DNA of 64,000 nt from Fimbriosthenelais zetlandica (taxonomy: Eukaryota): contig OZ365109.1 of NCBI GenBank assembly GCA_977030845.1, positions 44,144,001 to 44,208,000 on the forward strand, written 5' to 3'. This document shows, in pieces, positions 1 through 61,001 of this stretch. Under the pieces are notes generated by a model, which had not been told where the DNA came from, did not search any database, and saw only the letters and a program-made list of their open reading frames with translations. Position numbers and translations under genes: made by a program. The stretch's first letter is position 1, and each line of letters opens with the position of its first letter.

Positions 1-3000
1 ATTAACCATCATGCAGTTTTCTTCGTGTAATATTTCATTATGAACAAGCCATGGTCAATTGGCAGAATACGACCTCCGGGTGCAATTTAAGTCGGAGACG
101 CAATTGAATTATTTCACGACAAGATATATCTTATTCGATAACATGTGCTATATAATGTATTATTTGTATGGTATATATTCCTCTCCGTCTCTGACTCGGG
201 AAGAGGCATATTTTTCTTATAGTTGCAGCTCGGGGTGAGAATGTAAGTTAAAGGGGTGGATACTAAAATGTCCATAAAGCATGGTGGAAGTACTGTACGG
301 TCGTCACCAGCTTCCTGCCTACTTGCCTGTATGTTGAAAGATCACCTGATAGAAGACTCTTAGCGCGTGTTTGCCAGGAATATGTCTGTCAGAACCTCGT
401 TATTTCGAATCCCGAATCTGCATTATGCTTGTTATATCAGTTATATAGATTTATCTGTGATTATCACTACTACAGTCCGTTCACTCTAGGTTGATCCGAA
501 ACTACAGTACAAATGTATGGTGGTTATGGTGGTTAGAGTGAACAGACTGAATAATTATACAAAGCGCAGACTCATTTAATTGACTATTTCATAATGGTAA
601 AACAGCCCAATTATCGCCCAGGCAAATTAAGACGTACACGTATTTCTGTAAAGAACTACATATAGTATACATTTCTGCTGCGTTTTCATTGCAAAAAGCC
701 GTGTTGAACTTTAAAAAATCATAAGTTCAAAAACAAGTAGATCCTTCAATTATAATCAGGTCAAACATGACGCCTCTTATACGGACCGGAAGTAAGAGTT
801 TCCGACCTATAGATTTGATTAATGCGTCATGACCTCTATGCAATATTCATGCCTTTAGTTACGTATGACAGTGCCCAGATCCACGGTATACAATCTAAAA
901 AATTTAAAACGTGGGCATGCATGCGATATGATGTTTCTTGCAGGCTTAATATTTAATTAGTTACCATTTCTCTGAATAAAGTAATATGGGGAGAAAATAA
1001 CCTCAAGGATTGATTCATCGTATCATATGTTACTAAATATTTAGGCTATATTTCTGAATGTTGCTTCTTTCCCACAATCATTTTGAAGTCATAAGTGGAC
1101 CTATGAGGGATATTGCACATTAAATATGGATGTTTGCTTCTAATATAGAAATGTCACATCTGGCCACCATTGGTGAGGTTTCATAGACCATAATAACCCT
1201 GTATACCAACTGTAGGATTTGGCGTAGTAGAAAAGATGTCAACCTTTACCCTACAGCAATATCCATCCCTATACTATCAATAACCACTCTACCAAGACTA
1301 AATTGGAGCAGCGATTTCCTGTTCTTAGTGAGGCTACATTTAGTAAAAATACCTTTTATTGTTCTATCTATTTTTAAATACTTAACATTTAAATAGATAG
1401 CTAAATCGACTGTTCAAGCAATCGCTGTACATGTATACGCCAGTGGCTTTAAGGGGATAAGTATTACCAATACACCACTCGAAATTTGATGTATGGACTC
1501 TGATGAAATGAGATGAACAGCAACCTTCCTTGATCGAGGACTTGCTCATCCATAAATAGCTTCACCCTTGGCAATGCTTTGAAAAGATATATGTGTGCTA
1601 TTCACTGGCTTAGGAATAATATTGCACTGGCATGAATAATCCAGAAGGGGGGTTGTATTGATTGGTCCTAAAAGACATGGGATATATATATGTGGCGTCA
1701 TGATCAAAAGGCATTATCCTATACACGCGACCCTACAACTTATTCCAATGCAGGTTGTGGACTCGATGATCTGAAAATGTTCTTCTCTGAACCTCAAGGT
1801 TGCAGTAACCAAATAAAATTATTTTATTTGGTTTCAAACAATAGAGTAGAACCAATTAATGAAATAGTTCTTCACTCGTTTTTTCGACCAACATTTTCTG
1901 TAAACCGGCATTCCATTCCATCTACTTTAATATCGTATTAGTACTGAAAGAATTGAGTGCTTATCATAATATGAAGGCGGAAAACACAATGGTGTGATTT
2001 CATTTTCATTCAATTATATCGTATTATGAACTATAATTGAGCGAGATGACCGGGAGAGAATACTAAAACGTATTTATATATGAAGGACACCACCCTTCCC
2101 CCTTCCATCCTAGCTGGAACCTGTCACTCTCCAGAATAAATAGAACATCACAGGCAACTTGCAAAATGGTGATCTCCCAGGCGTCGCAAGGGGCCGGCGA
2201 AATGATCACTTTCTGATGGGTTGGTTGCCATAGTAATCCCAGCACAAGATAAGAGTCAACGGCTTCGCTGCTTTCTCTTGATGGTCTTCTGCACAAGGGT
2301 AACAGACACAATTATGGCCCACACGAGTTTAACCAGAAGACTTTCCCCTTTAAAGATGAACAACAACTCCAAAGGGATCCCGATGATTTAGCACCCTCTG
2401 TGTGAAAAGGCTATATAGCCAACATGTATGGTTATTTCCAGTGTTTTATCAATATTTTCTCCCTTGAGAAGTTAATTCCAAAGCTAGGTCAATCGGAATT
2501 AAAGATCAAAGTTTGTAATGCATATATATACTTATTATAGCCATATTTTAGTTTTAAATTACTAATGTGGCATCAGCAAATGACATTACATCATTTCCAA
2601 ATTAATCATGTTTCGATAATCTTGTCATATTTACAATACTGCTGGTAGATCTTATAATTATGGACACTTTTATTCAGAAGGGCACTCGTTTAGACTATTA
2701 AAGATATGCGCCTTTTTTCTACTGCGACCTGGCTTCGAACCCGCTTTGGCTAACCTTTGGTTGGCTTTCCGGTCCTACACTCTAGCATTCGCTACTGGTC
2801 GCCCCCTACAAAAGTATAGTATCATTAAATTTTGAAAACAATCATGTGCCCTCGCACCCTCACCATCATTCTGAAATCCTCCTCCACTGTTCTTCCCAGA
2901 TGCCCGAGCTACTCCAGAGACGGCATCACTGAGCAGCTCAACTGTATAGCTATCCCATCTGCTGGGATAACTTGCAACTACAGTATCGAAGGTTTCAGGT

Positions 3001-18900: not shown

Positions 18901-21900
18901 TTTCTTAGAATCACTTTGAGCGAAACTTGGCACCGAGAGGTCATGTGAGGGCTCGCAGAAGTTTTGCAAGCGGGAGGAAGTTTGTCTAAGTTTTAGATGT
19001 TGTTTAATTGTGTTGATCAGGTGCAGAACATGGTCTCAATTTGAAAATATATCTGGAGAACAATGAACGTACTGGCGGACCTTTTCCTGATGCAGGAATC
19101 AAGGTCTCGTTGTCTTTACAATCTTTACAACACAATTTTTGTCAAGAATGATTTCATAATAGTAGCCTCAATTAAACCTATATGACGTGTTTTATGTGCA
19201 AAACCCTTATATCAGACTGTTTCTACTTATGCACGTAGATCCATCTCCATGATCCTAGCAACCTGCCAATGGTTAGTGAGACTGGTTTTGCTGCACCTCC
19301 TGGTCTCCATTCCCTTTTTTCCATCAAGTACACAGAGGCAAGTTTTTACAATCATATTTGTTTAACATATTATTGTTGTTAGACTCCTTTTAGTTTAAGA
19401 TGACAAAATGTTGGTCGGGGGATTTGACTAAATTTCTATGTAGTCATCCAAAATTGATATCATCTTTATTATGTGTAATCTCATGACAGACTACAAGTTT
19501 ACCTCAGCCTCATGGTAACTGCACCCAGAAAAATGAATTAACGTACTACCCGGCGGAGGATTACAAGTATACTGTACAGTACTGTCAAACTGAGTGCAAA
19601 ACGCATGCTGCCATTGATGCCTGCAGCTGCAAGGAAGCATACATGTCTGGTGTGTACAAACATTATACAAAATATAGACATGTAATTCAGAAATGCTGCA
19701 TGTCCTATATTCATTTAGCCTCCATTTGTTTGATGCATTCGAATGTTATATAATCTATCTGCAGAATTCAAAAGCGTTAAATTATTAGATCTTCTTTTTC
19801 ACAGGAAATGCTCCATCAACTGTATGTAATATGGACGAATACATCAACTGCATTCTTCGTGCTACCTGTAAGCCTGTCGAGGATTTGTATCTACATAAAT
19901 TTAGTTCTGGACATATACATGTATATAATAGTAGTTAATATTATAACGGTTTCAAATAGCAGTAAACAATATGATTTACTTCAGTTTATGCAGGTTTCAT
20001 GTAAATTTGTACTGAATGTTATATTTATCTATGCATTGTTGAAAACTCGTGTGATTAATGCAATTTGACTTCACCTAGTTTGTCAGCATGCATTTTTGCA
20101 ACTCTTGAACATTAACTTCAACTGTTAATTGCAGCAAAAAAGGTACATTCCTCGGAATGCGAGACAGATCAATGCCAGATAGGCTGCGAGGTCAAATCAT
20201 ATAGTATACTTACTTCTGCTGCGATGCTGAGGAAGATGGATCTAATGAAAAGTCTTACCAAAATCGATGAAGAAAACATACAAACTGTGGAAATCAAACA
20301 TAGGACAAATCCCGAGTTACTATCTAACACTGCTAAACAGCTTTTGAACGCCCTCACAGCGATGGAATACTATATGCACATTGCAGAACTGGAATGTGGC
20401 CTCTCATCTGCTTCAAAATACTCCATAGCTGCTAACTCCTTGCTGTCAATACAGAAACGAATCATACAAGATCTTGACACTGCATTAGAAGACCTGAGGT
20501 TGATAGAAAAGGTCTACAAGGACGTGTTTGGCTACAGAAGGGATGTCCTTCATAGAATACTCGAAGAAATATCCAGTAATTATCTGAGGCTTCTTGAGGC
20601 AGATGGATCATCAAATGTAACATACACTGACCCAGAAACGGATGCCACAATAACTGAATTACGTTCCACAGCAGTTGAAGATATTAACTATGCTCTGGAG
20701 ATCATAAATGACATAATCAATAAGGAAGAAGTTCTTTTCGTTCAACCTATGAGAAAGTACATAAACGAAGCCCCGAGTAGCTCAATTGGAAACATAAATA
20801 GTCGATCATATGCAAATCTCATACCCAGCAGAACTAATTACCAGAGGGTGAAACCAGGAGTTGAGACTGGAGAAAGCAGAGACTATACTCCATATAAAAA
20901 CATAAGGAAAGTATTGAGGACAACTTTGAAGCGCATTTCACGCAAAGGGAGACAAAACAATAATTATGCAGATATAGGGAACTTCTTTGATCTAATTCAC
21001 ACAGCTGAAGAAGTTAAGACGCACACTTCTGAGTTCCCAAAAGTCATACAAGAGGTTAAGGACGCTGACACGATATTGCAAAAAATATCTGACCTAACTT
21101 TGATGTTAGACTTTAATTTTGAAGCCGAATCGCAAAATGTTACCATGGTTTATGATGAGCTTAAAGCAGTGTGTAATAATTTCATGAGTGGTAGCATGGT
21201 AAAGTTACAGCTTTCCCTGTCAGTACACGATGGCAAAATAAACAGTTTTATTGACCAATACATAAAACTGCAGCAGAGGATAGATACTAACCTTGCCGAG
21301 AAAATCTTGAATCATGCAGATCAGATTGAAACGTTGTCTCGAAATGCGTATCAAACCTTATTGTGGGCCATGAATGATATGCAAAAGTACTATAGCACAG
21401 ACAGCATGGATTTTGAAGGACGGGCGAGAAACCTCTTTATATGGAGGAAACCGGAATATTCTGCCGATACAAATGGGGCACTAATTACAAAGTACTCCAA
21501 CAGTCAAACTCTGTGGTCTCCGTACAGAAGCCTTGAATCATTCACTGAGGCAAGTCTACCATACATAGATTCCTCAAACAATGCTTTCCTAAAAAAAAAG
21601 TATAATATAAAAAGGCACTTTAATGAAGTTATTATTTTGCATTTTCAGAATGGCGCTGCAAATAGAGTCATACGATTCGTTCTTCAAGACCTCTTCAGTA
21701 CCATAAATGATGAATTTAAAGCCGTCGGAGAAAACTTCCAGAACCTTATTCGTAAAATAGAGACACCTTTTGAAGAACTGAAGAAAGACTTTCAAGCATT
21801 TACGTCAGAGTTGGTACTGGACAACAATTTCATTAGGTGGGTAAATCTTGTGAACTGAGCCTGGGGCTAATTTAGACAAAATAATGGCAATGACCTCCCA

Positions 21901-23910: not shown

Positions 23911-26900
23911 GTAAAGAAATCATCTTCTAAATATTCACTTCAAATTATTATAAAGAGTAAATTGGCTTGACAGTGGCTTTGATTATTGTTCTAATCTATT
24001 TACATTGATCGGTTTTTTGAAAATATTATACACACTACATGTACATAATAAAAAGGTTTCTTGTCCCAAAGACCCAAGATGGGGCCGACTTTTGTACGAC
24101 TTCACTCAGGATACAACTTTACATGGGATTCGTTACATTACACAGAAGAAGGCTCACTGGCTCCGAAGGTATAGATCTAATGACACTTAACATTACTTAA
24201 TTAGTGAATTTGGGGTCTAACTTTTTGGCCCAAGGTCTTCAGGACTGTAGCAAGGCAGCACCCCGCCAGTCATCACCCCCCACCCCCCCCCCCCCGCCCG
24301 CCCCCCACCCCCCCCCCCCCCCAAAAAAAAAAGGCTGTCTGCATTATAATGCCTGCCAGTGTTCAGGACAGTGATCAAATAATTTGCCATTTTATGTTGC
24401 ATAGCTTGAAACCAATTTAAGGGGGTGTTGGCCACGCCAGCATTATAAGTCTCCCAAAAAGAGTGTTCTGATATGTTGTAACTGTCAAGTGCTTTCTTAT
24501 AGTCTACTAATCTAAGTATTCTAATTTGACCCATTTCATAAAATGTACTATTATAACAAAACTTCAGGGATGGGGGTGAACGACATAAAATACTGCCCGA
24601 ACTGGCGTAGCCAGTGAGGGCTTAGTATTTTCAGTGAGGGCTTAGTATTTTCATCGAGTTCACCCCCATCCCTGAAGTTTTGTTTTTATTCCATGGTCCC
24701 TACGGTCTTAAATTATATTTTTGTGTTTTAAAAAAGAAATAACCGAAATAGGACGTCATAGTAACAGTTGCAAAAGCTGGCAGACAATATGAAAAATATG
24801 CCTCATTCTGAGAGCGGGCAATATTGTGTTGAGAGCGGGCAATAAGTAGCACTTATTGCCCGCTCTCAAACTAACCATGGAATAAAATCATTATAAATTA
24901 TGCAAATGGCCCATATGGTTAGACAGGTTGCATTAGTCTGCATAATTAGTATTATAGTGCCTAGATGACCAGAGGGAATAATAGTAATTGATTGAATCAT
25001 TTTGTCAATGGAGCAAACAAAGCAAGCAATAGTATAACAAAACTTCAGGGATGGGGTCAACGAGATGAAAATACTGCCCGAAACGGCGCAGCCGTTGAGG
25101 GCATGTGTTTTCATCGAGTTGTCCCCATCCCTGAAGTTTTGTTTTTATTCCATGGTCCCTACGGTCTTAAATGATATTTTTTGTGTTTTAAAAAAGAAAT
25201 TACCGAAATAGATCTACCTTAGAGCTGCACGACATTGGGTTGACTTGCTTTAGCTTGCTTGACGACCGTGCGGCACCGCCATTTTGATTGAACTTGACAT
25301 TGATTTATTAGGTCATCCAATTTTTTCTTACTTTAATTTTTAATACTCAATTGGGGAATGGAACATATTCTTTCATTTATTTGTATTTATTTATGTCAGT
25401 TATTAAAATTAATGCATAGTTAGAGGCATACTTCGGGGCCTATCGCTAATGCCGCGCTCCTGCTCTGCCAGATGACGTCCCATTATGACGTCATAGTGAC
25501 GTCGCAAAAGGGGCCGCTCTCTGGCAACCAGTACGAGAACTACGCCTCGATCTGAGAGCGGGCAATATAGTCTTGAGAGCCTGCAATACGTGCTACTTAT
25601 TGCAGGCTCTCAAACTAACCATGGAATAAATATTAACATTTTATGGACTTGAACACGTTATAAGGTCCTGTTACTCCAGAATTTTATGAGATCAATGGCC
25701 TGGTGTAATTATACGACAATATACAAAGGTGTGGGATCAATGGAGTGGTTTCTTTGACGAGATGGACAACTCATTGTAACTTTTATTGATTCTTAAATTT
25801 GATTGGGGTTAATATGGGTATTAGCCTGGTAACATTCGTCATGACCTTTTACCACTCCAAATCTTAAAGTCCATAAATTGTGTTTTTTATTCCATCCAGG
25901 GTGATATGGATAATACTAATTTTGTGTACATTTATTGGATTCTTGACAATGATAATTGTCAGCCTTCTCAAGTATTATGCTTATCGCACAACCACAAGTG
26001 TTGCCATAACCTATGAAGATCAACTTCCCTTCCCTGCCGTTACTGTCTGCAACAACAATATGTTCAGGCAAGTAAAATGATTCTTAACATTATGAACATT
26101 TAAGGGCAATATACCAACTAAGTTCAGAATATCAGAGGATAATGTTCCTGCAGAATGTCTCATTATTTTCACAATCGTCATTTTAGTGGTCTTTGCAGTA
26201 ACTCTTTCTCTTTTATAGTAGCTCTCTAGTTCTCTCAACACAGACCATTTTACAGACATGTTGTACAAGAAAATCGTGGCGAGGGTGGGTCGACAAGGGT
26301 ACCCTCATCGAGTGATTGTATTGTACAGGTTATGTTTTTGACAACACAGTGCTTGGATAAAGCAATAATGAGCAACTGTCCAAACATTTTTTCAAGATAA
26401 CAGCGTTGGAACAATGCAATCGCTCAGTGAGGACATACCCTCACCGTACCTCGTCCTCGGCATGATAATATATTATACTTGTACAAAGCATGATATAGAA
26501 TTGCTCACACATATTAAATTGATTATTCAGGTTGACGAAAGCGTTTGAATATGGACTCTACGATACATTACAGAACAATTTCGAGGAGACTGAATTTGAT
26601 GGTAATTTATAGGGCCTATTATAGGACTATATGCCTTTGGTTAATAATTTTAAGAATATATTTTTCCACTTTAGTTCGATGATACAAGGTGTGCTGCTTT
26701 TTGCTCCCTCATGGGATACATGTACACAACTAAACCAAATGTTCCTACCCTCAATTGCAGAAATAAACGAATGCTCACGAAAATATTATTTTCAAACTGA
26801 ATTCTGTTTCGATGGGTTAAAGAAGCAGAAGAACGTGATCGAAAAATGTAAGGGCAACGTTAAGAGTCATTTGACTTACGTTAATGTTACTCTGCGAGGA

Positions 26901-35900: not shown

Positions 35901-38900
35901 TGATTTCCAGGTGCAGAGCATGGCCTCAATCTAAAAATATATTTGGAGAATAATGAACGAACTGGCGGACCATTTCCTGATGCAGGAATCAAGGTCTCCG
36001 TGTTTTTTGTAACCATCTTTACAACCTCAATTAGAATATTCTTAGAAATCTATAAGATTTCTTTTATTGCAAACTCTTGAACTATTTCTAATTATTCTTG
36101 TAGATCCATCTCCATGATCCTGAAAACATGCCACTGGTTAGTGACACTGGTTTTGCTGCACCTCCGGGTCTCCATACCCTTTTTGCCATCACATACACGG
36201 AGGCAAGATTTTATTTAACTTTTTAACATAATTTTTAAAACATTTTTAGACTCCTAACATGATACCAAAATGTTGGTTGCAGGATTATTATTTGATTAAA
36301 TTCCCATGTAGTCATCCAAAATTTATATGCATAATCTTTATGACAGACTACAAGTTTACCTCATCCTTATGGTAACTGCACCGAGAACAATGAACTGACG
36401 TACTACCCGGCAGAGGATTACAAGTATACTGTACAGTACTGTCAAACTGAGTGCAAAACGCATGCTGCCATTAATGACTGCAGCTGCAAGGAAGCATACA
36501 TGTCTGGTGTGTACAAACATTATACATGTTATTAAAAAAATATAATTTTAAGTCGTATTCAACCCAATTTTCTAACAGAATGTGTTCCAAACAATACAGA
36601 CAATAATACATGTACATGTAGCCAGTGTGTAGCTCGTTGCAACACAAAGACTGTTATCTCCTGAATATAAGTCTTAAAATGTATTGACTCTTATTCACAG
36701 GAAAAGCACCATCAACTGTATGTAACATGGATAAATACATCAACTGCATCCTTCGTGGTTCATGTAAGCCCTTATATTCATGCAAGTTCACTATTAAAAG
36801 TACTGACTGTCAACTTTATGTATTTCAATATGATCTTGCTTAGTTTTTGTGTATGTTTTGTTGCCTATTGTTTATTTTTTCTTCTCTGTCAATTGCAGCA
36901 AATAAATCACATTCCTCAGAATGCGAGACAAATCAATGCCAGATAGGCTGCGAGGTCAAATCATATAGTATACTTACTTCTGCTGCGATGCTGAGGAAGA
37001 TGAATCTAATGAAAAGTCTTACCAAAATCGATGAGGAAAACACACAAACTGTGGAAATCAAACATAGGGCAAATCCTGAGTTACTATCTAACACTGCAAA
37101 ACAGCTTTTATACGCCCTCACGGCGATGGAATACTATATGCACATCGCAGAACTGGAATGTGGCCTTTCATCTGCTTCAAAATACTCCATAGCTGCTAAC
37201 TCCTTGCTGTTAATACAGAAAAAAATCATGCAAGATCTTGACACTGCATTACAGGACCTGAGGTTGATAGAAATTGTCTACAAAGACGTGTTTGGCTACA
37301 GAAGGGATGTCCTTCATAGAATACTGGAAGAAATATCCAGTAATTATCTGAGGCTCCTTGAGGTAGATGGATCATCACATGCAACCTACACTGACCCAGA
37401 AACGAATTCCACAATAACCGAATTACGTTCTGACTCAATTGAAGATATTAAGTATGCTCTGGAGATAATAAATGACATAATCAATAAAGAAGAGCTTCTT
37501 TTCGTTCAACCAATAAGACAGTACATAAACGAAGCCCCGAGTAGCTCAATTGGAGACATCGATGGTCGATCATATGCAGATCTCATACCCAGCAGAACCA
37601 ATTACCAGAGGGTTAGAGCTGGGGTTAAGGCTGGAGAGAGTAGAGATTACACTGCATATACAAACATGAGGAGTGTATTGTGGAAAACTTTAAGACGGAT
37701 TTCACAGCAAGGGGGAGATGACAACAATTATGCAGATATAGAGAACTTCTTTGATCTAGTTCGCACAGCTGAACAAGTTAAGAATAACACTTCTGAGTTC
37801 CCAAATGTTATACAGCAGGCTAAATATGCTGACACGTTATTGAAAGAAATATCTTACATTACTTTGATGTTAGACTTCAACTTTGAATCTCAATCACAGA
37901 ATGTTTCCATGGTTTATGATGAGCTTAAAGCAGTGACTAATAATTTCATGAGTGGTAGCATGGGAAAGGAAGCCCTTTCCATCTCATTACAGAATGGCAG
38001 AATCCAAAATTTTATTGACGAATTTAGAAAACTACAGGACAGGATAGACACCGAGCTTGCCGCAAAAATCCTGAGTCATGCAGATCAGATAGAGACGCTG
38101 TCTCGGGAAGCCTATATAACTCTCTTGTGGGCCATAAGGGATATGCAACACTACTATAATAAAGACAGTATGGACTTCGAAGAACATGCAAGAAATTTCA
38201 TCATATGGAAGAAACCGGAATATTTCCCAGATGCAGAGGGGGCCCTAATTTCGAAGTATTCGGATAGTCACTCTCTGTGGTCTCCTCACAGGCGCCTTGA
38301 ATCTTTCACCAAGGCAAGTCTTCACCTAATACTATGCTTTTTAAAAATTTATAAATAGGCCTAGGCAGTCAACTTAGGCCTATATCAAATGGTCCCACAG
38401 ACCGTTCTAAATTGTTCGACCATTTAGAAAGACCTGGAGGGAAATTTGATCCATTCTCCTTTATTTCTTCATAATCTATAGAAAACCATTCCAATCCCCC
38501 CACCCCCATCCCGTTGCACAACAATGTGGTTGTACAGTAGCTGTTCCCTATAAATAAACTTGTTTGCATTTTCAGAGTGGCGCTGCAGATAGAGTCATAA
38601 GATTTGTTCTTCAAGACCTCTTTGCTACCCTAAAGAATGAATTTAGAGACGTTGGAGAAAACTTCCAGAACCTTATTCGTAAAATAGAGAAACCTTTTGC
38701 AGAATTGAAAAAAGACTTCCAAATCTTCCAATCAGAGTTGGAACTGGGAAACAATTTCGTACAGTGGGTAACCTTTGCGATTGTCAATAAATGCAAGCAG
38801 ATATCTAAAAATAATATTTTCCTCTTATGGTACTGGAGGCCAGGATTACTGAAATGAACTCCAAACTCCAAAGTTCTTAAATTAATGTCAATTTATAATG

Positions 38901-39472
38901 ATACATGTTTTACGGTTCCAGGGACAACTTCCTTGAGGTTGATATTTATTTTGGAGAAATGAAGAAAGCATCAGTGACACAGGAACAAGCTTATCCCCTC
39001 TCTTCATTTTGGGGTGAGTCTGCACTTTGAGATATAGTATAGTTCTATCATTAAATTTAGGTGATGCTCGACGATACCGTGGGCGATAATAGAGGCTAAT
39101 CCCATACCTGTTATTATCCGTTTCAATTTCCAACATTCAGCCTGTATTTTTAAAAAGTTATAAAAAGTTACTCAGTGAGTTCCTCGGTATGGTATAGCAC
39201 CAAGTATAGCTCATTGCTAATTTGGCGGACTCTGCACCATGATCATGGATGATAGCCCTATACAGTTAGCAACTTTGTCAGCTAATGTTCTGATAATCTA
39301 TATTTCAGCTGAAGTGGGTGGATTTCTCGGTTTGCTACTCGGAGCCAGTATTGTGACAGTCTTTGAATTCATTGATTTGATCGTATCCAACACTTGCAGC
39401 CGGAAACGTGTGGAAAACCAGAAGTTCACATCGAAAGTCACCCCAATAAAACAAAAGAAACTACTGTTCTGA
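23886..39472 (+). CDS. Giant multidomain DEG/ENaC channel subunit, paralog 2 (apparently intact, about 2,087 aa)
   Basis: Exons: 23886-23910, 24072-24168, 25900-26067, 26531-26601, 26761-27156, 27303-27440, 27556-27909, 28184-28372, 28624-28734, 29047-29199, 29562-29957, 30637-30786, 30968-31140, 32047-32221, 32580-32709, 32925-33136, 33397-33519, 33663-33935, 34167-34505, 34694-34834, 35512-35575, 35661-35782, 35911-35993, 36104-36202, 36347-36506, 36701-36763, 36899-38313, 38576-38763, 38922-39013, 39309-39472. Sum 6,264 nt with all junction phases compatible; same core motifs as paralog 1. Confidence 0.93.
24550..25632. repeat. Duplicated palindromic repeat modules in intron 2 of paralog 2
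   Basis: AACAAAACTTCAGGGATGGGG..CCCCATCCCTGAAGTTTTGTT at 24555-24684 and 25036-25143; TGAGAGCGGGCAATA..TATTGC..GCTCTCAAACTAACCATGGAATAAA at about 24825-24897 and 25553-25632. Confidence 0.7.
26262..26460. mobile_element. Diverged copy of the palindromic MITE family of about 235 bp
   Basis: ttgtacaa..aaaatcg..gcgaggg..agggtaccctc..cagtgcttggata..tgtccaa; matches the copies at 35167, 42226 and 56858. Confidence 0.5.
26761..34834 (+). CDS. Paralog 2 exons 5-20: PAN-MAM-kringle-LDLa-MAM-MAM(CUB)-MAM(S/T linker) insert in the finger domain
   Basis: Exon-for-exon homologous to paralog 1, with an uninterrupted exon 6 (GFPLVKCDWETPHCEFEIL..DHTLET). Confidence 0.88.
31190..31915 (+). mobile_element. 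CR1/L2-type LINE 3' fragment
   Basis: Translates VKRSIYYKASTAWNNLPASIRNLETIERFK (WN-x-LP motif of the ORF2 C-terminus); 3' stem-loop gaaaagcggctcgatagggccgagttgtattcagaataaa. Confidence 0.7.
35167..35399. mobile_element. Palindromic MITE (family with copies at 42226-42445 and 56858-57074)
   Basis: TGTTGTACAATAAAAT..GGCGAGGGTGCCCT ... AGGGTACCCTCGCC..ATCTTATTGTACAACAG; internal GTGCTTGGA / TGTCCAAGCAC hairpins. Confidence 0.75.
36899..38763 (+). CDS. Paralog 2 exons 27-28: helical knuckle insertion
   Basis: ORFs 36847-38358 and 38564-38857; closely similar to paralog 1. Confidence 0.85.
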
Positions 39473-47500: not shown

Positions 47501-50500
47501 ACCACTCGAATATTCGTGCCTCCAACAAGAGGGAGACAAGATGGTAGAGACCATCCTGGACTTGTTATATAAGATATACAACACCATTAATCAACAAGGG
47601 CATCAGCGATGAGAAAAGATGCGAGTAGGTCGTGGCCTCAGACTGAAATCTTAAAACTAAATAATACAGAAGACCTGTAAAAAACATCTTAATTCTACAG
47701 GTTGAAATACAATACAATAGAACAAAAGGCAGGCCCTCAGAATAATCTTATAATAATAAATAGGTAGCATACATTAGATGCTTACCTCCACTTACTGTCG
47801 TATCCTCTGCTCTTCATCCAGCGATGAGCCATCCATACCATGAGTCATTCATGGGCTAATGAGGAGTAGTATTATTCATCACCAAGTCATGAATATTAGT
47901 CCATTCATGACCAAGTCACGGTTATTAGTCCATTCACATAGTGGGAATTTAGGAGGGTGAGAGGAGTCGCTGGTGTTAATGTGGACATGTATAATGTAAT
48001 TCTTTTCTTGAAATTTCTATGTTTATTATAAGGGTTCGCCCAGGAGTGCGAAAGCAAAGGAGGAAGGAATGTTAATGTGGGGATTCAGAAGTTTTACTTT
48101 TAATGCTTGATTACAATGTGATATAGGGGTTGGCATCTTGTTTGTGTAATTGGCATGTCTGAGCTTGCAACTTGACAATGGCCAGCATCAATGCCAGCAT
48201 TATAGCTTTGTCAGCTTGTAACAAACAAAGGGACAATAACATAAAAAGGGGAAATCTGGGTAATATTGAAATGGGCCAATGAGGGTTAAGGGTATAGATG
48301 GGAACAGTTTAAAAAGGCATGCTGTAGGAACAATCAGGGTCACTTGTGATCCACCCGTGGCAGGGGTTTAAGGTCACTTGTTGACTCTCAACTCCTTGAG
48401 AACCAACTCTACCCTCGATTACTCTACTGTCTTCAGCTACCATATATTCTAGGGGGATATAGCTGGGAAAGGAATACAACTAGGAGTATATCTTTGGACA
48501 TTGTGTATCAACTGTATCTTTGGACATTGTATATCATATATGTTGGATTTTATATAAGGCATAAATAAATAAGTGGCAAGCCATTAAGCATACGATCATT
48601 GGTCGTCTTTAATATACAGAGGTCAGCCCGGTATATTTACACTGGTGTGAGAACCCGGTTTGGCTTGCCCTTAATTTTGCCTTGAGGATATTTGACAGAC
48701 AGGCCCACACGTATGACAAAGGTCAGCCAGGAGGACACTAAATCTGTTATTTCAGAGGACTAAACTTCCGAAACATTGACTATGTATACCTGTTGAACCA
48801 TCACAAACCTACATAAGGATCGGGGTCTCAAAATGTGTGCTATGTGGGGTTCGAGGCAACCCATGGAGCCTGGGGTGTTCACAGGTAATGGTGATTACGA
48901 TGTAAAACAATTTGTTAATGATTGTGATGCTTGGGCAGAGTACCATGGGGACAAGACAGGGATGCAGATAAAGTTTAACCTTGGAGATTGGCTAGGAGAC
49001 GATGCCTATGATTGGTATTTGTATGTCTTAAGGAGACAGCATTTACCCTGGAAGGATATAAAGGAGAATTTGATTCTAAAATATTCTTCAAATATGCTAA
49101 AGGAGAGAGATGATTTGTTATATTTTAAGGAGGTGCTGGCATTGATGTATAGCCTCGCACCAACAGAGGATAGTGCAGCTAAGATACAAAACGCCCGGGC
49201 TGGTATCTCATTTGCATTACACAAGATCAATCGACAGATAGAAATCAGCAGCTTCGTTGATCCTGATCCTGAGGCGAGCGATTATGCAAGAAGATGTGCT
49301 TTTGCCAGAGAGGAAAAGCCAAATGTCCCTCGTGAAATAAAAATCCTCCCTGAGATGTGGAGACCTTTTGTGGACGAAGTTAAGGGTCCAGAGGAGGAGA
49401 AAGTCATACAGTCTGTGAGCCCACTAGCAGAGAACTCACCTGAAGTCGCATCACAGGATAAAATCAGAGATGAACCGGTTAACGAACATGTAATATCCGA
49501 GGTACAGGATAAAGAACATTTTATACCTGATTACCATGTTGAAAATCCGGTTATATCTGATGAACAGGATGAGGGATTAGATGGGACACAGGACAATAAC
49601 AGAGGTACAGAACAGAAAGAGGGATTGAATGATACACAGAAGGATGAAGTAGATAAAGAAGAAGTGGATACAAAGGAAGATGAACTGAATGACCAACAAG
49701 AATATGAAAGGCATAATGAATTAGAAGGACAGGATAACGAACAACTGGATGAAATTAATAACAGACAGGTAGATAGACCGGAAGACAAACAGGACGATAT
49801 ACCCGGTAATACACAAAATGATGAATTCCACAATGTTACACTGAATGATGAACTGATTGATGAACCAAATGATACACTGAATGATGAACTGATTGATGAA
49901 CCAAATGATACACTGAATGATGAACTGATTGATGAACCAAATGATACACTGAATGATGAACTGATTGATGAACCAAATGATACACTGAATGATGAACTGA
50001 TTGATGAACCAAATGATACACTGAATGATGAACTGATTGGTGAACCAAATGATACACTGAATGATGAACTGATTGATGAACCAAATGATACACTGAATGA
50101 TGAACTGATTGATGAACCAAATGATACACTGAATGATGAACTGATTGATGAACCAAATGATACACTGATTGATGAACTGATTGATGAACCAAATGATACA
50201 CTGAATGATGAACTGATTGATGAACCAAATGATACACTGAATGATGAACTGATTGATGAACCAAATGATACACTGATTGATGAACTGATTGATGAACCAA
50301 ATGATACACTGAATGATGAACCAAATGTTACACTGAATGAGGAATTGAAGAATGAACTTGATGAAAAACGGGACCATCAAATGTGTGACAAACAGGTTGA
50401 TAAACATTTCGACAAAAAGGTTGATGATTCAGATATTATGATCATGGTGTCAGGGGAAAATGATGGGTCTCAAGATCAGCAACCATGTATCATGGGCAGT

Positions 50501-53500
50501 GTGGATGTTTTAGTTCCAAAGGTAGTCCAAGGATGGACTGGAATAAGAAGGAGGGGGAGCTATGTAACAAATTGCCGGGATGCCAAGACATTCAAAGAAA
50601 CAATTTTCAGGGGTCTAGTATCTTGTGCTGGATAGATATGCATTTCCATATTATATTATTATTACAAATCTTGTGATTAATGATATTTTGACACGGACTG
50701 TCCAAAGGAAATGTTTAACCATTTTGCGGGGGAAATATAATTATCTTATTTTATGTGTTACATTTTAAACAAAATTAATTTTTGTGAACAAACTCACGTT
50801 TGCAAAGTTATGGATAGTTATTTTGATATTATTCAAATTTCTTAATTTATTATAAGGGTTCGCCCAGGAGTGCGAAAACAAAGGAGGAAGGAATGTTAAT
50901 GTGGACATGTATAATGTAATTCTTTTCTTGAAATTTCTATGTTTATTATAAGGGTTCGCCCAGGAGTGCGAAAGCAAAGGAGGAAGGAATGTTAATGTGG
51001 GGATTCAGAAGTTTTACTTTTAATGCTTGATTACAATGTGATATAGGGGTTGGCATCTTGTTTGTGTAATTGGCATGTCTGAGCTTGCAACTTGACAATG
51101 GCCAGCATCAATGCCAGCATTATAGCTTTGTCAGCTTGTAACAAACAAAGGGACAATAACATAAAAAGGGGAAATCTGGGTAATATTGAAATGGGCCAAT
51201 GAGGGTTAAGGGTATAGATGGGAACAGTTTAAAAAGGCATGCTGTAGGAACAATCAGGGTCACTTGTGATCCACCCGTGGCAGGGGTTTAAGGTCACTTG
51301 TTGACTCTCAACTCCTTGAGAACCAACTCTACCCTCGATTACTCTACTGTCTTCAGCTACCATATATTCTAGGGGGATATAGCTGGGAAAGGAATACAAC
51401 TAGGAGTATATCTTTGGACATTGTGTATCAACTGTATCTTTGGACATTGTATATCATATATGTTGGATTTTATATAAGGCATAAATAAATAAGTGGCAAG
51501 CCATTAAGCATACGATCATTGGTCGTCTTTAATATACAGAGGTCAGCCCGGTATATTTACACTGGTATCTCAGGTGGGACAGGTGGGCTGGAGGTGTACG
51601 TCAATACAAGGCAAGGCAACGACCAAGCTCAGGTGTGAAGGTGGAGGCAGGTGTGAACAGGTGTGAAGGTGGGGCCTGGTGTAGTGTTATTTTTCTCTGG
51701 TACGGCGATATAACGTCCGCACAACACACCAACACCCTGAGGAGGGGCACACTGAAAATGCCATGGACAGCTTGGGGATTGAACCGCCGACCCTCTGATC
51801 AGATTACGCCTGGTTATTTATTTTGTGTAACATGAATATCTAAGTAATGTTAAGTTTGAGTAAGAACTGACAAGTATTACATACTTGTCCAATCTTCTGT
51901 CATCTTTCACTAATAAGTAGGGGGTAATTGGCCTGGGGGTAATTATCCTACAGGGGTAGTAATCCTAGGTGGTAATTGGCCTGGGGGTAATTATCCGGGT
52001 GGTAAATATCCTAGGGTGGTAGTCATCCTAGGTGGTAGTTATCCGGGTGGTAGTCGTCCGGTAGTGATTGTCCTAGGTGGTAGTAGTCCGGGTGGTAATC
52101 GCCCTGGGGGGTAGTGCGCCTGTCACCCGCCTGGTTCACTCAATCTGAAAAAAATATATTAAGAAATAATGAAATAATCATCTTTATGCATATATGTTGC
52201 GTAATATCTGGGCGGTTAATTAAAATTTATACTTACTGAATAGGCCTACTATACGCCTAAATGGGTCAGAGGAAATCTAGGCTAATATTTCTAAATTTAA
52301 AATCACTGAATTGGTCTAAGTGAAGGCCAAAACATAAGAGCTGAATGAATTTCTGGGTAGACCTAAGGTGCAAATGTTACCAATACAGGGAATCGAACCC
52401 TGGTCTCTCACATGCTAGGCAAGCGTTCCAACCACTGGGGCCATACATTGTCACCTCTTGGAACATCCAGGTGGCTGGTCACGTTTCTAAAAACATCAGC
52501 TAGGCCTACCTGCTGTCATAATGAAGTAGGCTTACGTGCTCATGTTGTGACAGAGAAGCTTCTCTCTACACAAACCCACAAAGTGCGGCCTACTGTCAAC
52601 TCGTGGATGATGGAGCATATATTTTGATTCTGGTACAAAACCTGTGAACTTGCACCTTGCTTAATTACTACGTGCACTATGAATACAGACTGTCTAAGGC
52701 AATTATTAGAGCTTTACATTTATATTTAGATGTGTTTTTTGCACATTTTCGCGTCACCAGTGTCAGAGGTGACTCGATCGCGTGCAGATCTCCGCTATTT
52801 TGGTTCTGCATGTGTCTCTAACTTGTTCTAGTACGTATTTTTACCACGTCATCCGCATCCGAGTTCACCAAAGACATCCTAACAATGTTAACTAACATAT
52901 TATAATGTTACAATTCAACAGTAGGCCTACTGACCTTTTATGATGGATGTTTTGATTTTTGAGTGAGGCAGCGGTCGGGCGTGCGCGTGTTCCTCCGCAG
53001 TCAGCTCGGGCGCATGTGGACGTCAGTCTGTGGGCGTCGATCCATTTTGAACTCATCATACTATGGAAACGCAAATGTAACCATAACTCCCGAGATGCGA
53101 AACCGGGAAATTAGTCCCGGTTCCGGACTTCGGGAAGCCGAAACCCGATATCGGACTTCGGGAACCCGACTTCGGCTTCCCGAAGTCCGATATCGGGTTT
53201 CGGCAACTAGCAGGGTAGACCCGAGACGCGAAACCGGGCCCGAAATCCGAAGTCGCCATTGAAATTGCACTGTAAACACAAAAGCCGAAACCCGGCAACT
53301 AGCAGTAAAGACCCGAGATGCGAAACCCGATATCGGGTTTCGGCAACCTGACTTCGGCTTCCCGAAGTCCGGAACCGGGACTTATTTCCCATTTCGCATC
53401 TCGGATTTCGTCCACTTTTAGGCCTCGCCTGAATCCGCGTATTTTCAAAAAATTGTATCGCGGTTCCGGGCTTCGGGATGCCGAAACCGGACTTCGGCAA

Positions 53501-56500: not shown

Positions 56501-59500
56501 AGGCCTACGCTGTGAGGCAAAGAAGCTTCGTACTGGATATGATTTGATTCTTGATAGGTACATGTATGAAGATAATGTCAAGTTCTGAACGTTATTCCAG
56601 ACACTATTCTGGACGTGAGCACTGAGTTCAAAGTCCCGGATGATGATCATAAAACGGGCGATGCTCGTACCACTTCCTCGCCCAACCAAGATAATGCAAA
56701 TACTGGTACAGAAGGCAGCACACCAGTCTTTGTTGATAAAACGACAAAGCGCTCAGTTTCAGGTATATTTCAAATTCTAATATACCATTGATATATTCAA
56801 AATAGATTTTCATAGCAACAGATTCTCCAATCCGATGCCATCCGATCCCCTATCCTAGCTGGTGTTGTACAATAAAATCGCCAATGGCGAGGGATCGGCG
56901 AGGGTGCCCTCGCGGTGCGATTAAATTGTTGAAGTGCTGTTTTTTTCTAAAAAGTGCTTGGATAACTGATTGTTAGTGCATTGTCCAAGCACTGTTTTCT
57001 TAAAAACAATGCTTGGACAATGCAATTGCTCCACGAAGGTATCCTCGCCATCGTCGATTTTATTGTACAACAGGGGGCATGTTTCAATTTTGTCCACGAC
57101 CTTTGGTTAGTGTTTAATTCAATTATTTCGAATCTTTGCAGATGATGTGAACATCAAACAGTTCTTGGAAGCCTCCAAACATGAATATGTAGATTTTATC
57201 CATATGTAAGTTTTCCTTTCATTCAAGCCGTTTCATAAAACAGATCTAATGTAATAAAATTATATTATGTAGAATATTAAAGTAATAGTAAAGCTATGAA
57301 CTATGGATCCTGGTACCGATATACATGTACTCGATATTCTATGTAGAGTCATTGCCTTTCAGATGTTCATGGAAGGGAGGGCCTTGTGATAAAAATCACT
57401 TCGTTGAGCAGTTCACTGACATGGGCCTTTGTTATACATTCAACGGTAACACCTCACTAGAGTTAAAATCATCAACATCAGGTAAACTAATATTCTAATT
57501 ATGTATACTATATACACGGTGCATTATCCCACGAATGGGTTTTTATTATTTGCACACTGTTTTGGTGGTTTCCGTTGACTATTGCGTCAAGAAATAGTGC
57601 ATTATTTTGACCACATTCTACTGCGATGAAGTCGTACCAATCACAGCGTGTACTCGTTCGAGGTCTAACCACTGTATAACACCCTACTATATGCTTTTGG
57701 AAAATACTAGGTTCAGATCAAGGCCTTCAACTTACACTCAATTTGGCCAATTATGACCGAGCTGGTTCAGAACTTACTGACTCAGGAGTGATGGTATGTT
57801 TGTACTTTGGATTAAATTGTGAATTGTTGGAAAATCCTGAACTCGCGTTTTCTATAAAAACAGACTTAAATTATAGATGCAAATGGTTTTTGTAGGTGTA
57901 TCTTCATGAACCAGAGAACATACCAATGGTTAGTGAGATGGGATTTGCTGCACCAGCTGGACTTCATACTCTTGTTTCAGCCAGCTACTCGGAGGTAATT
58001 TGTTTGTTTGTATTTTAATGGAGTCTTCCATTAAAGTTGGACATGTATTGTTATTATTGTGTTCGAATCCAGGTACGAATTTCTCAAAGGTTCGTATATA
58101 GTATCGCACCAGAAAGAAAAAGTCACTATAGACGAAGAATTAATGATCGATTTTTGTTTCGATTTTACAGACTAATAACCTTAAACGGCCATATGGAAAC
58201 TGCACTGCGGAAAATAATCTGGAGTATTACCAAGGAATGAATTACACAATGGAATATTGTAGGACAGAATGTAAGACAAAGGCAACTGGTCTGATCTGCG
58301 GGTGCAAGCATGCCTTTATGTCTGGTAAGTGAATAATTACATGACAGGGATCACTTGCACTCAAGCAATCAATGTTCTCATAGGTGATGAAGTAACAAAG
58401 CTTGATGATTTAGTAAATCACCGATGCCATGATCTCATAGCATTCCTAATTGCTTAGAAGTGTAGAAATTCTGACTTCTTTTTCAGATGTAGCACCTTTC
58501 CCTCTTTGTAGCATGAGTGACTACATCAGATGTGGTCTAAATTTCAAAGGTCAGTGCAGATTAATTAAATTATACTTTCTCTTTATCTCCCCCCCCCCCT
58601 TCTCTCTCTCACTCTTTGACCATCTGTCTGTTTGTCTCTATCCAATAACTATCTAATCTTTATCCCTCAAAGAAACGTTCCTCGAATTCATGTACTTGTC
58701 TCTGATATGCAGGAGGTCTCAATGGTTCCTTATCAACATGTGAAAAAGAAAAATGCCAAGTTGCATGCAAAATGATCAACTACCAAATTATGTCATCATC
58801 TTCAAAGTTGACAACAGTGGATCTGAATAATCGAGTTTCAGAGAAGTTCTACTCTGCACTTGAAATAAAAAATAGGGCTGATCCAACGCGCATCGTGTCA
58901 ACAGTGAGAAATTTAGATAAACTGATTCTGTCCATCAACTACTATAAGGATATGGCTGAAAGGCAAACTGGTACAAGTCCAATGTCCAGGTATACCAAAG
59001 TAGTTAAAGCCATGAATGAAATCCAAACACAGATAGTGATTGACTGTCGAAAAGTTTTGGATGACCTTAAACACATTAGATCTGTTTACATGGACATTTT
59101 TGGGTACAGAATCAATGCCTTACATTATAAGCTTGTTGAGGTACTCAATTATGCAAGGTCCATGGTACAACGAAACAGCCAGGGTGATTGCTATGGTGGT
59201 ATGAATGACAACTTGACCATTCGACTTTTGAGAGATGTACAAAAGTCTTTGTATGATGTAAAGGATGGAACAGAAAAAGAGTTTCTCAATAGACTTAGGA
59301 ACTACATGAAGTCATATAACACAAGCAATGTCGAAGGACTCTCAGGAGAAGAGATTGCTAACCTGATACCTGATAACATCGGCCTAAATAATTCATACGG
59401 TTACTGCGTCGCCCAAGATGTTTATTCTGAATTTCTAGACATCTTCAACAATGTCTTTAAAGGGGTATGTATGGATGAAGGTCAGTACCTGAATTTTGTG

Positions 59501-61001
59501 AAGGCTTTTGATGAGCTGAAACATTGTAATGAAGAGTTTGGGCTGGTTTTGGATAAAATTGATCGTGCCATTGGAGAGATGAGAAAATTAGAAGGACCTG
59601 AAATGAGTGACTCTTACGAACTGGACTTCAACTTTGAATTTGAATCACAAAACCTGACTAAACAATTTGATAAGTATGCAGCTCTTTCCCAAAGATTCCG
59701 TGCTGGAAAGATAACAAAGTCTCATCTCTCCGAGGACCTGGATTTGAAAAATATTTTTTTGACTATAAACCAATTTCGGCAATTCCAGAATAGTATTGGA
59801 TCAAAAATCACTGAGAAACTGATGGAAAGTACCAAAACCCTTGAACATGTGTCCTTGGATTTATACAACGCCGCAGTAGAAGCGCTGGTAGATCTTCAAA
59901 CGTATTATAAAAAGGAACATTTGGATTTGGAAAAAAGAGCACGGGCTTTGTTAATATGGCGAAAACCAGAATTCTCAACTGACACTGAAAAACTCATTGA
60001 ATTACAATACGAGGACAGCACGAGGCTGTGGTCTCCAAATAGGAATTTTTATACTTTTGTGAAGGTAAGGTGAACCATTTAATAATTTCTTTGGTCAGCA
60101 GCCTCTCTCAAACACGTATGAACTGTAGACTTAGCATTGGCAATATTCCTTTTGAAACGGGCTCCATCACTCCAATCTACATTGAGGAAAAATAATCTGA
60201 ATTGTGAGTAGGACAACGATTAAGTCGGGAAGGAGCTGTTATTTTCAATAATTATCTGAAATAGTATAGCAGTGCATCACTAGTCTATAGCATATTTAAG
60301 CCCTGCAATAATTATTGAACAATCTCATCATTTTCCTAGTCTCAGGCAGCTTCCGGAATCATAAGATTTGTAGTGAAGGAGGTATTTCAACCTCTGAGGA
60401 AAGAACTCAATGACATCACATTTGAGCTAAACCAGGAGCTTGGTGATGTGCAGATGGCACTCGATGATATCAAGAAAGAAATGGAAGCATTTCAACAAAG
60501 TCAAACAATGGACAAAGACTTTGTCAGGTAGACAAACCTTAATCCTAAGATTCTGATTACGATAACTATATTAAGCTTGTGCCAATTATTCCTCTGGTTT
60601 TTCTTCCTTTCAGAAATAACTTCCTAAAGTTAGATGTTTACTACGGGGAATTGAAAAAGGAGATTGTTACATTGAGTGTGGGTTATACGATGGCCTCATT
60701 TTGGAGTAAGTACACTTGATACGGTACCTAAAGAAATAATAGCTAGCGGGTAATAGCACATGTATTATTTGCTATGTTGAATATTTGCGATAATTAAACC
60801 AATTTAATTGAATAATTATACTCTTCAGGTGACCTTGGTGGGTACCTTGGCTTACTCCTAGGTGCCAGCGTTGTTACTGTGTGTGAATTTCTCGACCTAG
60901 TTTTCTCAAATGCCATTCACATCCGAAAGCGGCGGACACAAGTTGAAGAAATGAACTTGACACAGAACAAGAAAAATGACACTAATCTGGACTGGTTTTA
61001 G
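41549..61001 (+). CDS. Giant multidomain DEG/ENaC channel subunit, paralog 3 (more divergent, apparently intact, about 2,160 aa)
   Basis: Exons: 41549-41567, 41728-41827, 42636-42803, 42927-42997, 43279-43635, 43721-43870, 43957-44313, 44470-44658, 44988-45098, 45321-45467, 45571-45963, 46064-46192, 46409-46575, 46743-46920, 54095-54224, 54378-54592, 54749-54850, 55134-55763, 56091-56411, 56601-56762, 57142-57205, 57363-57481, 57711-57793, 57896-57994, 58171-58324, 58487-58549, 58713-60064, 60340-60527, 60614-60705, 60829-61001. Sum 6,483 nt. Motifs TTLHG, FPGVTICN, FTDMGLCYTFN, RPYGNC, SDLGGYLGLLLGAS. Confidence 0.92.
42226..42445. mobile_element. Palindromic MITE copy
   Basis: Near-identical core to 35167-35399. 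Confidence 0.7.
43279..56762 (+). CDS. Paralog 3 exons 5-20: PAN-MAM-kringle-LDLa-MAM-MAM(CUB)-MAM(Ser/Tyr linker) insert
   Basis: LTLKGCMTLCSMIHTEDCSKVVYGWKEKQC; SCLEFYY, GFALDDL; GIDYQG..SGKTC..GPSC; CQSSEFRCSDGFC..CNGNADCIEGEDE; DLAIDNIQI; GNIKSPNYPDLY..VNFTTN..VGFSAEF; AALDEIKI; CDFTEQNACGY. Confidence 0.85.
48833..50635 (+). CDS. Gag-like protein with long acidic tail and 13 copies of a 12-aa repeat
   Basis: PGVFTG..VKQFVNDCDAW..LGDDAYDWY resembles the Ty3/gypsy capsid N-terminal pattern (P-x2-F-x-G; L-x-G/D-x-A-x2-W); no protease/RT/integrase. Confidence 0.7.
   Translation: MCAMWGSRQPMEPGVFTGNGDYDVKQFVNDCDAWAEYHGDKTGMQIKFNLGDWLGDDAYDWYLYVLRRQHLPWKDIKENLILKYSSNMLKERDDLLYFKEVLALMYSLAPTEDSAAKIQNARAGISFALHKINRQIEISSFVDPDPEASDYARRCAFAREEKPNVPREIKILPEMWRPFVDEVKGPEEEKVIQSVSPLAENSPEVASQDKIRDEPVNEHVISEVQDKEHFIPDYHVENPVISDEQDEGLDGTQDNNRGTEQKEGLNDTQKDEVDKEEVDTKEDELNDQQEYERHNELEGQDNEQLDEINNRQVDRPEDKQDDIPGNTQNDEFHNVTLNDELIDEPNDTLNDELIDEPNDTLNDELIDEPNDTLNDELIDEPNDTLNDELIDEPNDTLNDELIGEPNDTLNDELIDEPNDTLNDELIDEPNDTLNDELIDEPNDTLIDELIDEPNDTLNDELIDEPNDTLNDELIDEPNDTLIDELIDEPNDTLNDEPNVTLNEELKNELDEKRDHQMCDKQVDKHFDKKVDDSDIMIMVSGENDGSQDQQPCIMGSVDVLVPKVVQGWTGIRRRGSYVTNCRDAKTFKETIFRGLVSCAG
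49832..50299 (+). repeat. 36-bp coding minisatellite, 13 full units (NDTLNDELIDEP)
   Basis: aatgatacactgaatgatgaactgattgatgaacca in direct tandem, with no spacers. Confidence 0.95.
51919..52128. repeat. G-rich degenerate minisatellite
   Basis: Repeated GG(T/G)GGTA(A/G)T...CC(T/G)(A/G) units of about 15-16 bp. Confidence 0.75.
52381..52446 (-). pseudogene. tRNA-Ala(AGC)-like pseudogene or SINE head
   Basis: Reverse complement GTATGGCCCCAGTGGTTGGAACGCTTGCCTAGCATGTGAGAGACCAGGGTTCGATTCCCTG: D-arm-like region, anticodon loop CTAGCAT, T-loop GGTTCGA; acceptor stem degenerate. Confidence 0.5.
53062..53709. mobile_element. CpG-rich foldback element with modular subrepeats
   Basis: TIR TATGGAAACGCAAATGTAACCATAACTC / GAGTTATGGTTACATTTGCGTTTCCATA (terminal TA may be a TSD); interior built of CGAAACCCGATATCGG, GACTTCGG and CCCGAGATGCGAAACC modules in both orientations. 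Confidence 0.8.
56858..57074. mobile_element. Palindromic MITE copy
   Basis: Near-identical to 35167-35399. Confidence 0.75.
58713..60527 (+). CDS. Paralog 3 exons 27-28: helical knuckle insertion
   Basis: ORF 58772-60073; alignable to paralogs 1/2 (EIKNRADP, DIFGYR, LDFNFEFESQN, IWRKPE, LWSP). Confidence 0.85.

Follow-up and report, generated by a model that had tools for sequence, protein, structure and literature searches.

The question raised by this locus is what some 500 residues of predicted helix are doing inside a DEG/ENaC-type channel subunit, at the place where ordinary members carry the two short helices of the knuckle. We looked at a 64,000-nucleotide stretch of Fimbriosthenelais zetlandica DNA (contig OZ365109.1, positions 44,144,001 to 44,208,000, forward strand; hereafter the window), in which three paralogs of a very large DEG/ENaC-type gene follow one another in tandem on the plus strand of AT-rich, intron-bearing, animal-type sequence (GC 32-46% per 2-kb windows, mostly 36-40%). 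The reading that we favour, and to which we give an even chance of being right, is that the insert is an integral extracellular domain of these channels which replaces the knuckle helices and projects a rigid arm with a conserved docking cap.

To define the insert, we used paralog 2 as the reference copy, where it is encoded by two plus-strand exons. Exon A (36899..38313, 1,415 nt, starting in phase 1) was delimited from its open reading frame (ORF), its splice sites, the paralog alignment and 33 further family copies. It follows an acceptor AG at 36897-98 and ends at a GC donor, AAG/GCAAGT (the slash marking the exon border), at 38314; the small exon before it has a phase-1 end, compatible with this start. 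Exon A starts with ECETNQCQIGCEVKSYSILTS, that is C-x4-C-x3-C-x4-Y-x4-S, and its opening sequence ECETNQCQIGCEVKSYSILTSAAML corresponds to the final thumb cysteines and strand beta10. About 30 of its first codons are taken up by this thumb-end Cys motif and beta10, and the remainder encodes most of the helical insert, with the motifs EIK.R..P, DVFGYR, LDFNFE, IWKKPE and LWSP. After a GC-AG intron of 262 nt (38314..38575, plus strand; acceptor ttttcag), exon B (38576..38763, 188 nt) encodes the last long helix of the insert, matching helix 508-560 of the AlphaFold2 model presented below, and ends NNFV(Q) at a donor CA/GTGGGT. The following exon opens at 38922 with DNFLEVDIYF. Between SILTSAAML and NFLEVDIYF we counted about 502 residues, with one Cys and four NxS/T sequons. 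The canonical two-helix knuckle unit (about 20-25 residues) is absent, and the 502 residues occupy the equivalent place between beta10 and beta11. The original prediction of a Cys-poor insert of about 500 residues, lying mostly in one 1.4-kb exon before NFLEVDIYF, is confirmed by this exon structure, length and single Cys. We take the insertion site to be that of alpha6/alpha7 in the ASIC knuckle, judging by motif order against the chicken ASIC1 sequence. When the insert borders were searched in Pfam and PDB as 24-38-residue pieces or as a five-sequence beta11-12 profile, no match to a solved ASIC chain or to the ASC profile was obtained, the pieces being too short.

The two other copies were found at 20135-21836 and 58713-60527, where they had been predicted. 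In paralog 1, exon A (20135..21549, plus strand) is 78% identical in amino acids to that of paralog 2 and is separated from exon B (21649..21836, plus strand, read from the sequence) by 99 nt with GC-AG splice signals (21550..21648, plus strand), in frame and stop-free. In paralog 3, exon A (58713..60064, plus strand; about 30% amino acid identity to paralog 2) keeps the Cys pair of the family and has a GT donor at 60065, while its exon B (60340..60527, plus strand; SQAASGIIRF...DKDFV) is followed by NNFLKLDVYY and an exon for the second transmembrane helix (TM2). The five anchors expected to be common to all paralogs, EIK.R..P, D[VI]FGYR, LDFNFE.ESQN, IW[RK]KPE and LWSP, are invariant in the alignment of the three. 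A reading of paralog 1 as a single continuous exon was considered and rejected: beside the GC-AG signals, the 99 nt at 21550-21648 were called an intron because the residues that they would code have a low predicted local distance difference test score (pLDDT) and no homolog has residues there. At this same site, the donor is GT in paralog 3 and in the family member P0001, and no homolog residues span the point. Retention of the 99-nt intron would add 33 residues and leave the protein unbroken, and ORF-based gene callers read through it. Introns of the GC-AG type, with the donor (A)AG/GCAAGT, occur at least twice per gene in paralogs 1 and 2, after exon A (21550 and 38314) and after the exon for the first transmembrane helix (TM1; about 4770 and 26070).

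The host proteins of the insert are DEG/ENaC channel subunits, as judged from profile matches and motifs on both sides of it. In paralog 2, the exon for TM1 and the strand that follows (25880-26077, plus strand) matches Pfam ASC (PF00858) over profile positions 21-80 (E 2.5e-15, 56.9 bits; the whole-protein cut-off is 23.6 bits). Upstream of the insert, the Cys-rich thumb exon (36344..36499, plus strand) matches the same profile at positions 265-316 (E 1.7e-6, 27.8 bits). Directly 3' of the insert, the exon for the palm strands beta11-beta12 (38922..39013, plus strand, 3' end approximate) reads DNFLEVDIYFGEMKKASVTQEQAY; these strands are also kept at two of the loci from other assemblies described below (L001 and L003). 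It is followed by the TM2 exon with the stop codon, which reads GGFLGLLLGASIVTVFEF and whose open frame spans 39302..39472 (plus strand), its 5' splice site being unmapped. This exon matches ASC at profile positions 432-455 with E 2e-4 and 20.9 bits for the 56-aa piece alone, slightly below the whole-protein cut-off, and carries a selectivity motif of the G/S-x-S type as LGAS (GAS). A suspected 1-nt frameshift in the TM1 exon of paralog 1 was rejected, as the site falls in an intron, upstream of the acceptor.

Relatives were looked for with HMMER, using a profile of the three window copies against 1.84 billion representative proteins. The search returned 34 hits, which comprise 33 further diverged copies and one entry, P0011, a Far1-related plant protein matched in seven short stretches, which we take to be spurious. 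The 33 others are ORFs, mostly of 380-525 aa, on eukaryotic contigs and look like copies of this large exon that were annotated as a 'gene'. Those extending far enough upstream start with the thumb-end Cys motif, for example CSCISQCNMITYSSTVS, and many stop at ...F[VI]x, which is the position of the splice site in the window. No additional relatives came from a similarity search, limited by its word index, with one paralog and with a 32-sequence profile. We define the 'knuckle-insert' family as the window copies plus P0001-P0034 minus P0011, probably with K1PHY3, a database protein to which we return below. Between the thumb-end Cys motif and beta11, its members share an E..R start motif, a conserved Pro, a Cys pair, FNFE and E..AR...IWRKP...W.

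Four other loci, each from another assembly, were read around the insert, and all four copies lie within DEG/ENaC genes. In L001, the upstream side has GLCYTFN and a weak thumb-like match (E 0.08), and beta11-12 follow the insert; in L002 the insert is followed by TM2 and then by TM1 of the next gene; L003 shows the same split into exons A and B, then beta11-12 and TM2; and L005 has a thumb exon upstream and, downstream, NNFLLLEIFF and a TM2-type exon with a GGS motif. The intron position differs in L005 (1583-3600), which belongs to a divergent branch: it falls just after IWRKPxVxFQ and not after ...SF[TV]K, so that the LWSP-type motif and the last helix share the second exon. Independent occurrence in other proteins had been raised as a check in the original prediction; no free-standing insert outside channels was found among the copies examined, and all those whose surroundings were read belong to DEG/ENaC genes. 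Finally, paralogs 1 and 2 were compared by the ratio of nonsynonymous to synonymous substitution rates (dN/dS), which is 0.36 in exon A and 0.355 in exon B, within the 0.19-0.64 obtained for the channel-core exons. The insert is under purifying selection.

For the fold, AlphaFold2 was given paralog 1, including its in-frame intron (window:20134-21837, 568 residues), with a family alignment of 33 rows. The model has a mean pLDDT of 84.1 and a predicted template modelling score (pTM) of 0.77, with 383 of the 568 residues in helix and 463 at a pLDDT of at least 70. Four long helices of about 48, 63, 52 and 53 residues are predicted at 41-88 (with a kink at 59), 95-157, 366-417 and 508-560; shorter helices are spread over 173-363 and a small beta hairpin forms at IWRKPE (440-452). 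The 33 intron-coded residues (472-504) gave pLDDT means of 51-66 in blocks of 10 residues and an alignment occupancy of 0.07. The same helix pattern was obtained for P0022 (pLDDT 85.9, pTM 0.77), which comes from another assembly, is 16% identical and carries the whole insert in one ORF. Known four-helix-bundle structures align to residues 59..559 and 125..310 of the paralog 1 model and to 55..525 and 127..288 of the P0022 model. Since single bundle structures span 59..559 or 55..525, the first two and the last two long helices would share one bundle in which the chain ends meet, and the range 125..310 (127..288) likewise points to a second bundle made from the middle. These models support an all-alpha, intramolecular double four-helix bundle, predicted with confidence in two distant members. 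What had been described as a folded helical module in the place of the knuckle, with an out-and-back course, is well represented in both models, the first and last long helices lying in one bundle. A simple coiled coil is not what they describe. Heptad-like runs had been expected at both ends; in a crude heptad test, the exon B helix scored 0.9, clearly above the 95% maximum of shuffles (0.72), the signal was moderate over 320-365, and the N-terminal end was weak, so that the expectation was half borne out, with strong periodicity in the last helix only.

The geometry of the domain was estimated from helix lengths and co-alignment ranges, not from coordinates. The longest helix, with its 63 residues, would measure about 95 Å if straight, and the domain would be a rod of about 75-95 Å with both chain ends at one end. 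For the second bundle, the middle 200 residues would pack alongside the lower half of the 63-residue helix. The conserved linker segment 418-507, which contains the IWRKP block, probably lies at the rod end farthest from the channel. In the family alignment, the best-conserved block is E..AR...IWRKP...W..P, which joins the third and fourth long helices; of the 36 best-conserved positions listed, 10 fall in the cap (residues 418-471 in model numbering). These include E428, A431, R432, I436, W437 (0.90), R438, the invariant P440 and W461; outside the cap, P231 reaches a conservation of 0.93.

The Cys pair of the family gives a hint of where the domain is placed. The two cysteines, at model positions 247 and 297, are present in 80-89% of the family; both are kept in paralog 3, and both are replaced in paralogs 1 and 2 (in paralog 2 the corresponding codons are at about 37636-37638 and 37786-37788). 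Such coupled loss and retention is the pattern expected of a disulfide, hence of an extracellular location, and the pair is probably a disulfide that was lost as a unit in paralogs 1 and 2. Together with the NxS/T sequons, it suggests extracellular placement.

How would such a domain work? In the mechanism that we propose, the two short knuckle helices between palm strands beta10 and beta11 have given way to about 500 residues, which would fold on their own, four long helices running up, down, up and down so that both ends come back to the channel. A rigid arm of about 75-95 Å may then project from the upper, static scaffold of every subunit, and its conserved cap may bind a partner, which could be the matrix, another protein or the arms of the neighbouring subunits. 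The same subunits may carry adhesion-type modules in the finger (putative PAN, MAM, LDLa and CUB modules, so labelled by eye); with these, the channel would be anchored or positioned, and force or binding would be passed to the palm strands. In alpha-ENaC, N-glycans of the palm and knuckle are needed for shear-force sensing via the matrix (PMC6955349). We favour the arm with a docking cap because the conserved surface seems to be remote from the channel, the knuckle is part of the static scaffold, and these alpha-ENaC glycans offer a precedent.

Other explanations have to be weighed against this arm. One of the four-helix bundles might act as a ligand sensor which binds a small molecule or a peptide, as the 4HB and HBM (McpS-type) sensor domains of bacterial chemoreceptors do, and modulates gating through the beta10/beta11 link. 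Compared with these domains, the insert has no sequence similarity, its scores are no better than with designed bundles, and host protein, kingdom and connectivity all differ; the 4HB_MCP and HBM family profiles of Pfam gave no match on it. We consider a sensor of this kind unlikely. A role in trimer assembly had been suggested in the original prediction. Extended to subunit selection, with three rods that would pack on the three-fold axis while the cap and the heptad-rich last helix decide which paralogs co-assemble, it would fit the strong periodicity of the exon B helix and the divergence of the tandem paralog inserts (78% and 30% identity), in which a code for pairing could lie. Yet in two distant members AlphaFold2 packs all long helices within one chain (pTM 0.77), and in ASIC structures the knuckles lie at the periphery of the trimer top, which leaves this role distinctly improbable in our view.

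A further idea is that the insert is absent from the mature protein, as a skipped exon or as a decaying or foreign ORF inside the gene. Two of the three copies do have a non-canonical GC donor, but AAG/GCAAGT is the usual consensus of GC-AG introns. Exon A is unlikely to be skipped, since it also carries the thumb-end Cys motif and beta10, both required by the channel fold. The splice phases are also compatible on both sides, the dN/dS of 0.36 speaks against decay, and the open frame persists in 34 cluster representatives, of which one is probably spurious, as well as in the four other DEG/ENaC loci; we hold the absence of the insert from the protein to be very improbable. The least credible explanation to us is that a known domain, or plain disorder, was missed when the sequence was read. 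In its favour there is no more than weak, sub-threshold Pfam noise (E 0.002-0.26). Against it, no Pfam family reached its cut-off with the three inserts or with exon B; a feature search of the ESM Atlas with the insert reached a top score of 0.57, which is no match; Foldseek against PDB gave no match at E<=0.001 (best E 0.02, with a template modelling score (TM-score) of at most 0.16); and an Atlas shape search gave no meaningful match, with a TM-score by model of at most 0.24. Moreover, 463 of 568 residues have a pLDDT of at least 70 and the two models average 84 and 86, so that the original view of the insert as neither a known globular domain nor disorder stands.

Some neighbouring features of the window were also recorded. 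On the plus strand, the ORFs 16291-16971 and 55100-55897 lie 5' of the channel core within paralogs 1 and 3 and have a low-complexity composition, Pro-rich with GSEPPxPP repeats or Ser/Tyr-rich; they are probably mucin-like linkers of the finger. An acidic 12-residue unit (NDELIDEPNDTL) is repeated in tandem about 17 times in a 600-aa ORF at 48833-50635 (plus strand), which lies between paralogs 2 and 3 unless it belongs to the start of paralog 3. Adjoining the channel cluster, a single-exon ORF of 595 aa (62176-63963, minus strand) is without Pfam match and has relatives 42-68% identical in several other assemblies; from these relatives we regard it as a conserved gene of unknown function.

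The coupling of DEG/ENaC channels to the outside is a long-standing question, and extracellular tethers have been postulated, for which candidates are few; the alpha-ENaC knuckle glycans are one of them (PMC6955349). A conserved helical rod of 500 residues at the knuckle would be a concrete candidate for a protein tether or docking arm, the more so if adhesion-type modules are present in the finger of these subunits, and, if this is true, the channels would have the extracellular tether postulated for DEG/ENaC mechanotransduction built into the insert. In its fullest form, which we put forward tentatively and hold to be clearly less likely than not, the proposal is that one invertebrate branch of DEG/ENaC carries an undescribed domain family whose arm of about 80-95 Å docks to the matrix or to a partner protein through the IWRKP cap and, with the adhesion modules of the finger, makes these subunits self-tethered mechanosensory or contact-sensing channels. 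A known channel family would then have an undescribed ectodomain module. Literature searches turned up no account of insertions at the knuckle or of giant DEG/ENaC subunits, and the domain is also absent from Pfam. As this domain family is missing from current domain libraries, such genes are annotated merely as 'amiloride-sensitive channel' or as fragments.

An example of such annotation came from the AlphaFold database clusters, where Foldseek gave the same top match for both models, K1PHY3, named 'Amiloride-sensitive cation channel 4-B' (E 8e-7 for paralog 1 and 7e-6 for P0022, probability 1.0); R7T5W4 also reached a probability of 1.0. K1PHY3 aligns through its residues 127/141-602 over nearly the whole insert. 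Both proteins are partial gene models in which the region is not annotated as a domain, and their structural alignments to the insert have 10-12% identity and TM-scores of 0.3-0.4. They are probably fragments of the insert family in other invertebrates, presumably a bivalve mollusc for K1PHY3 and an annelid for R7T5W4, going by the accession series.

Compared with known systems, the insert takes the position of the ASIC, ENaC and FaNaC knuckle (alpha6-alpha7): like it, it follows the last thumb cysteines and beta10, precedes beta11-beta12 and TM2, and belongs to the upper, fairly static part of the ectodomain. It differs from this knuckle in length (about 500 against about 20-25 residues) and in predicted fold (a double four-helix bundle against two short helices), and its own motifs, IWRKP, FNFE and the Cys pair, are absent from ordinary knuckles. 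Extracellular helical bundles are also found in TTYH (Tweety) and prominin, which superpose on the insert with a root-mean-square deviation of 6.6-6.9 Å and a low TM-score and have no sequence relation to it; their helices continue from transmembrane helices, whereas the insert bundle sits in a loop of a beta sheet. A similar principle is seen in the GRIP domain of ENaC and the extra Cys-rich domains of degenerins, which are likewise large peripheral additions of the ectodomain to a conserved core. These additions are in the finger and are beta-rich or Cys-rich, while the insert is at the knuckle, Cys-poor, all-alpha by prediction and several times larger. The core of palm, beta-ball and thumb in DEG/ENaC channels tolerates large peripheral additions that tune regulation.
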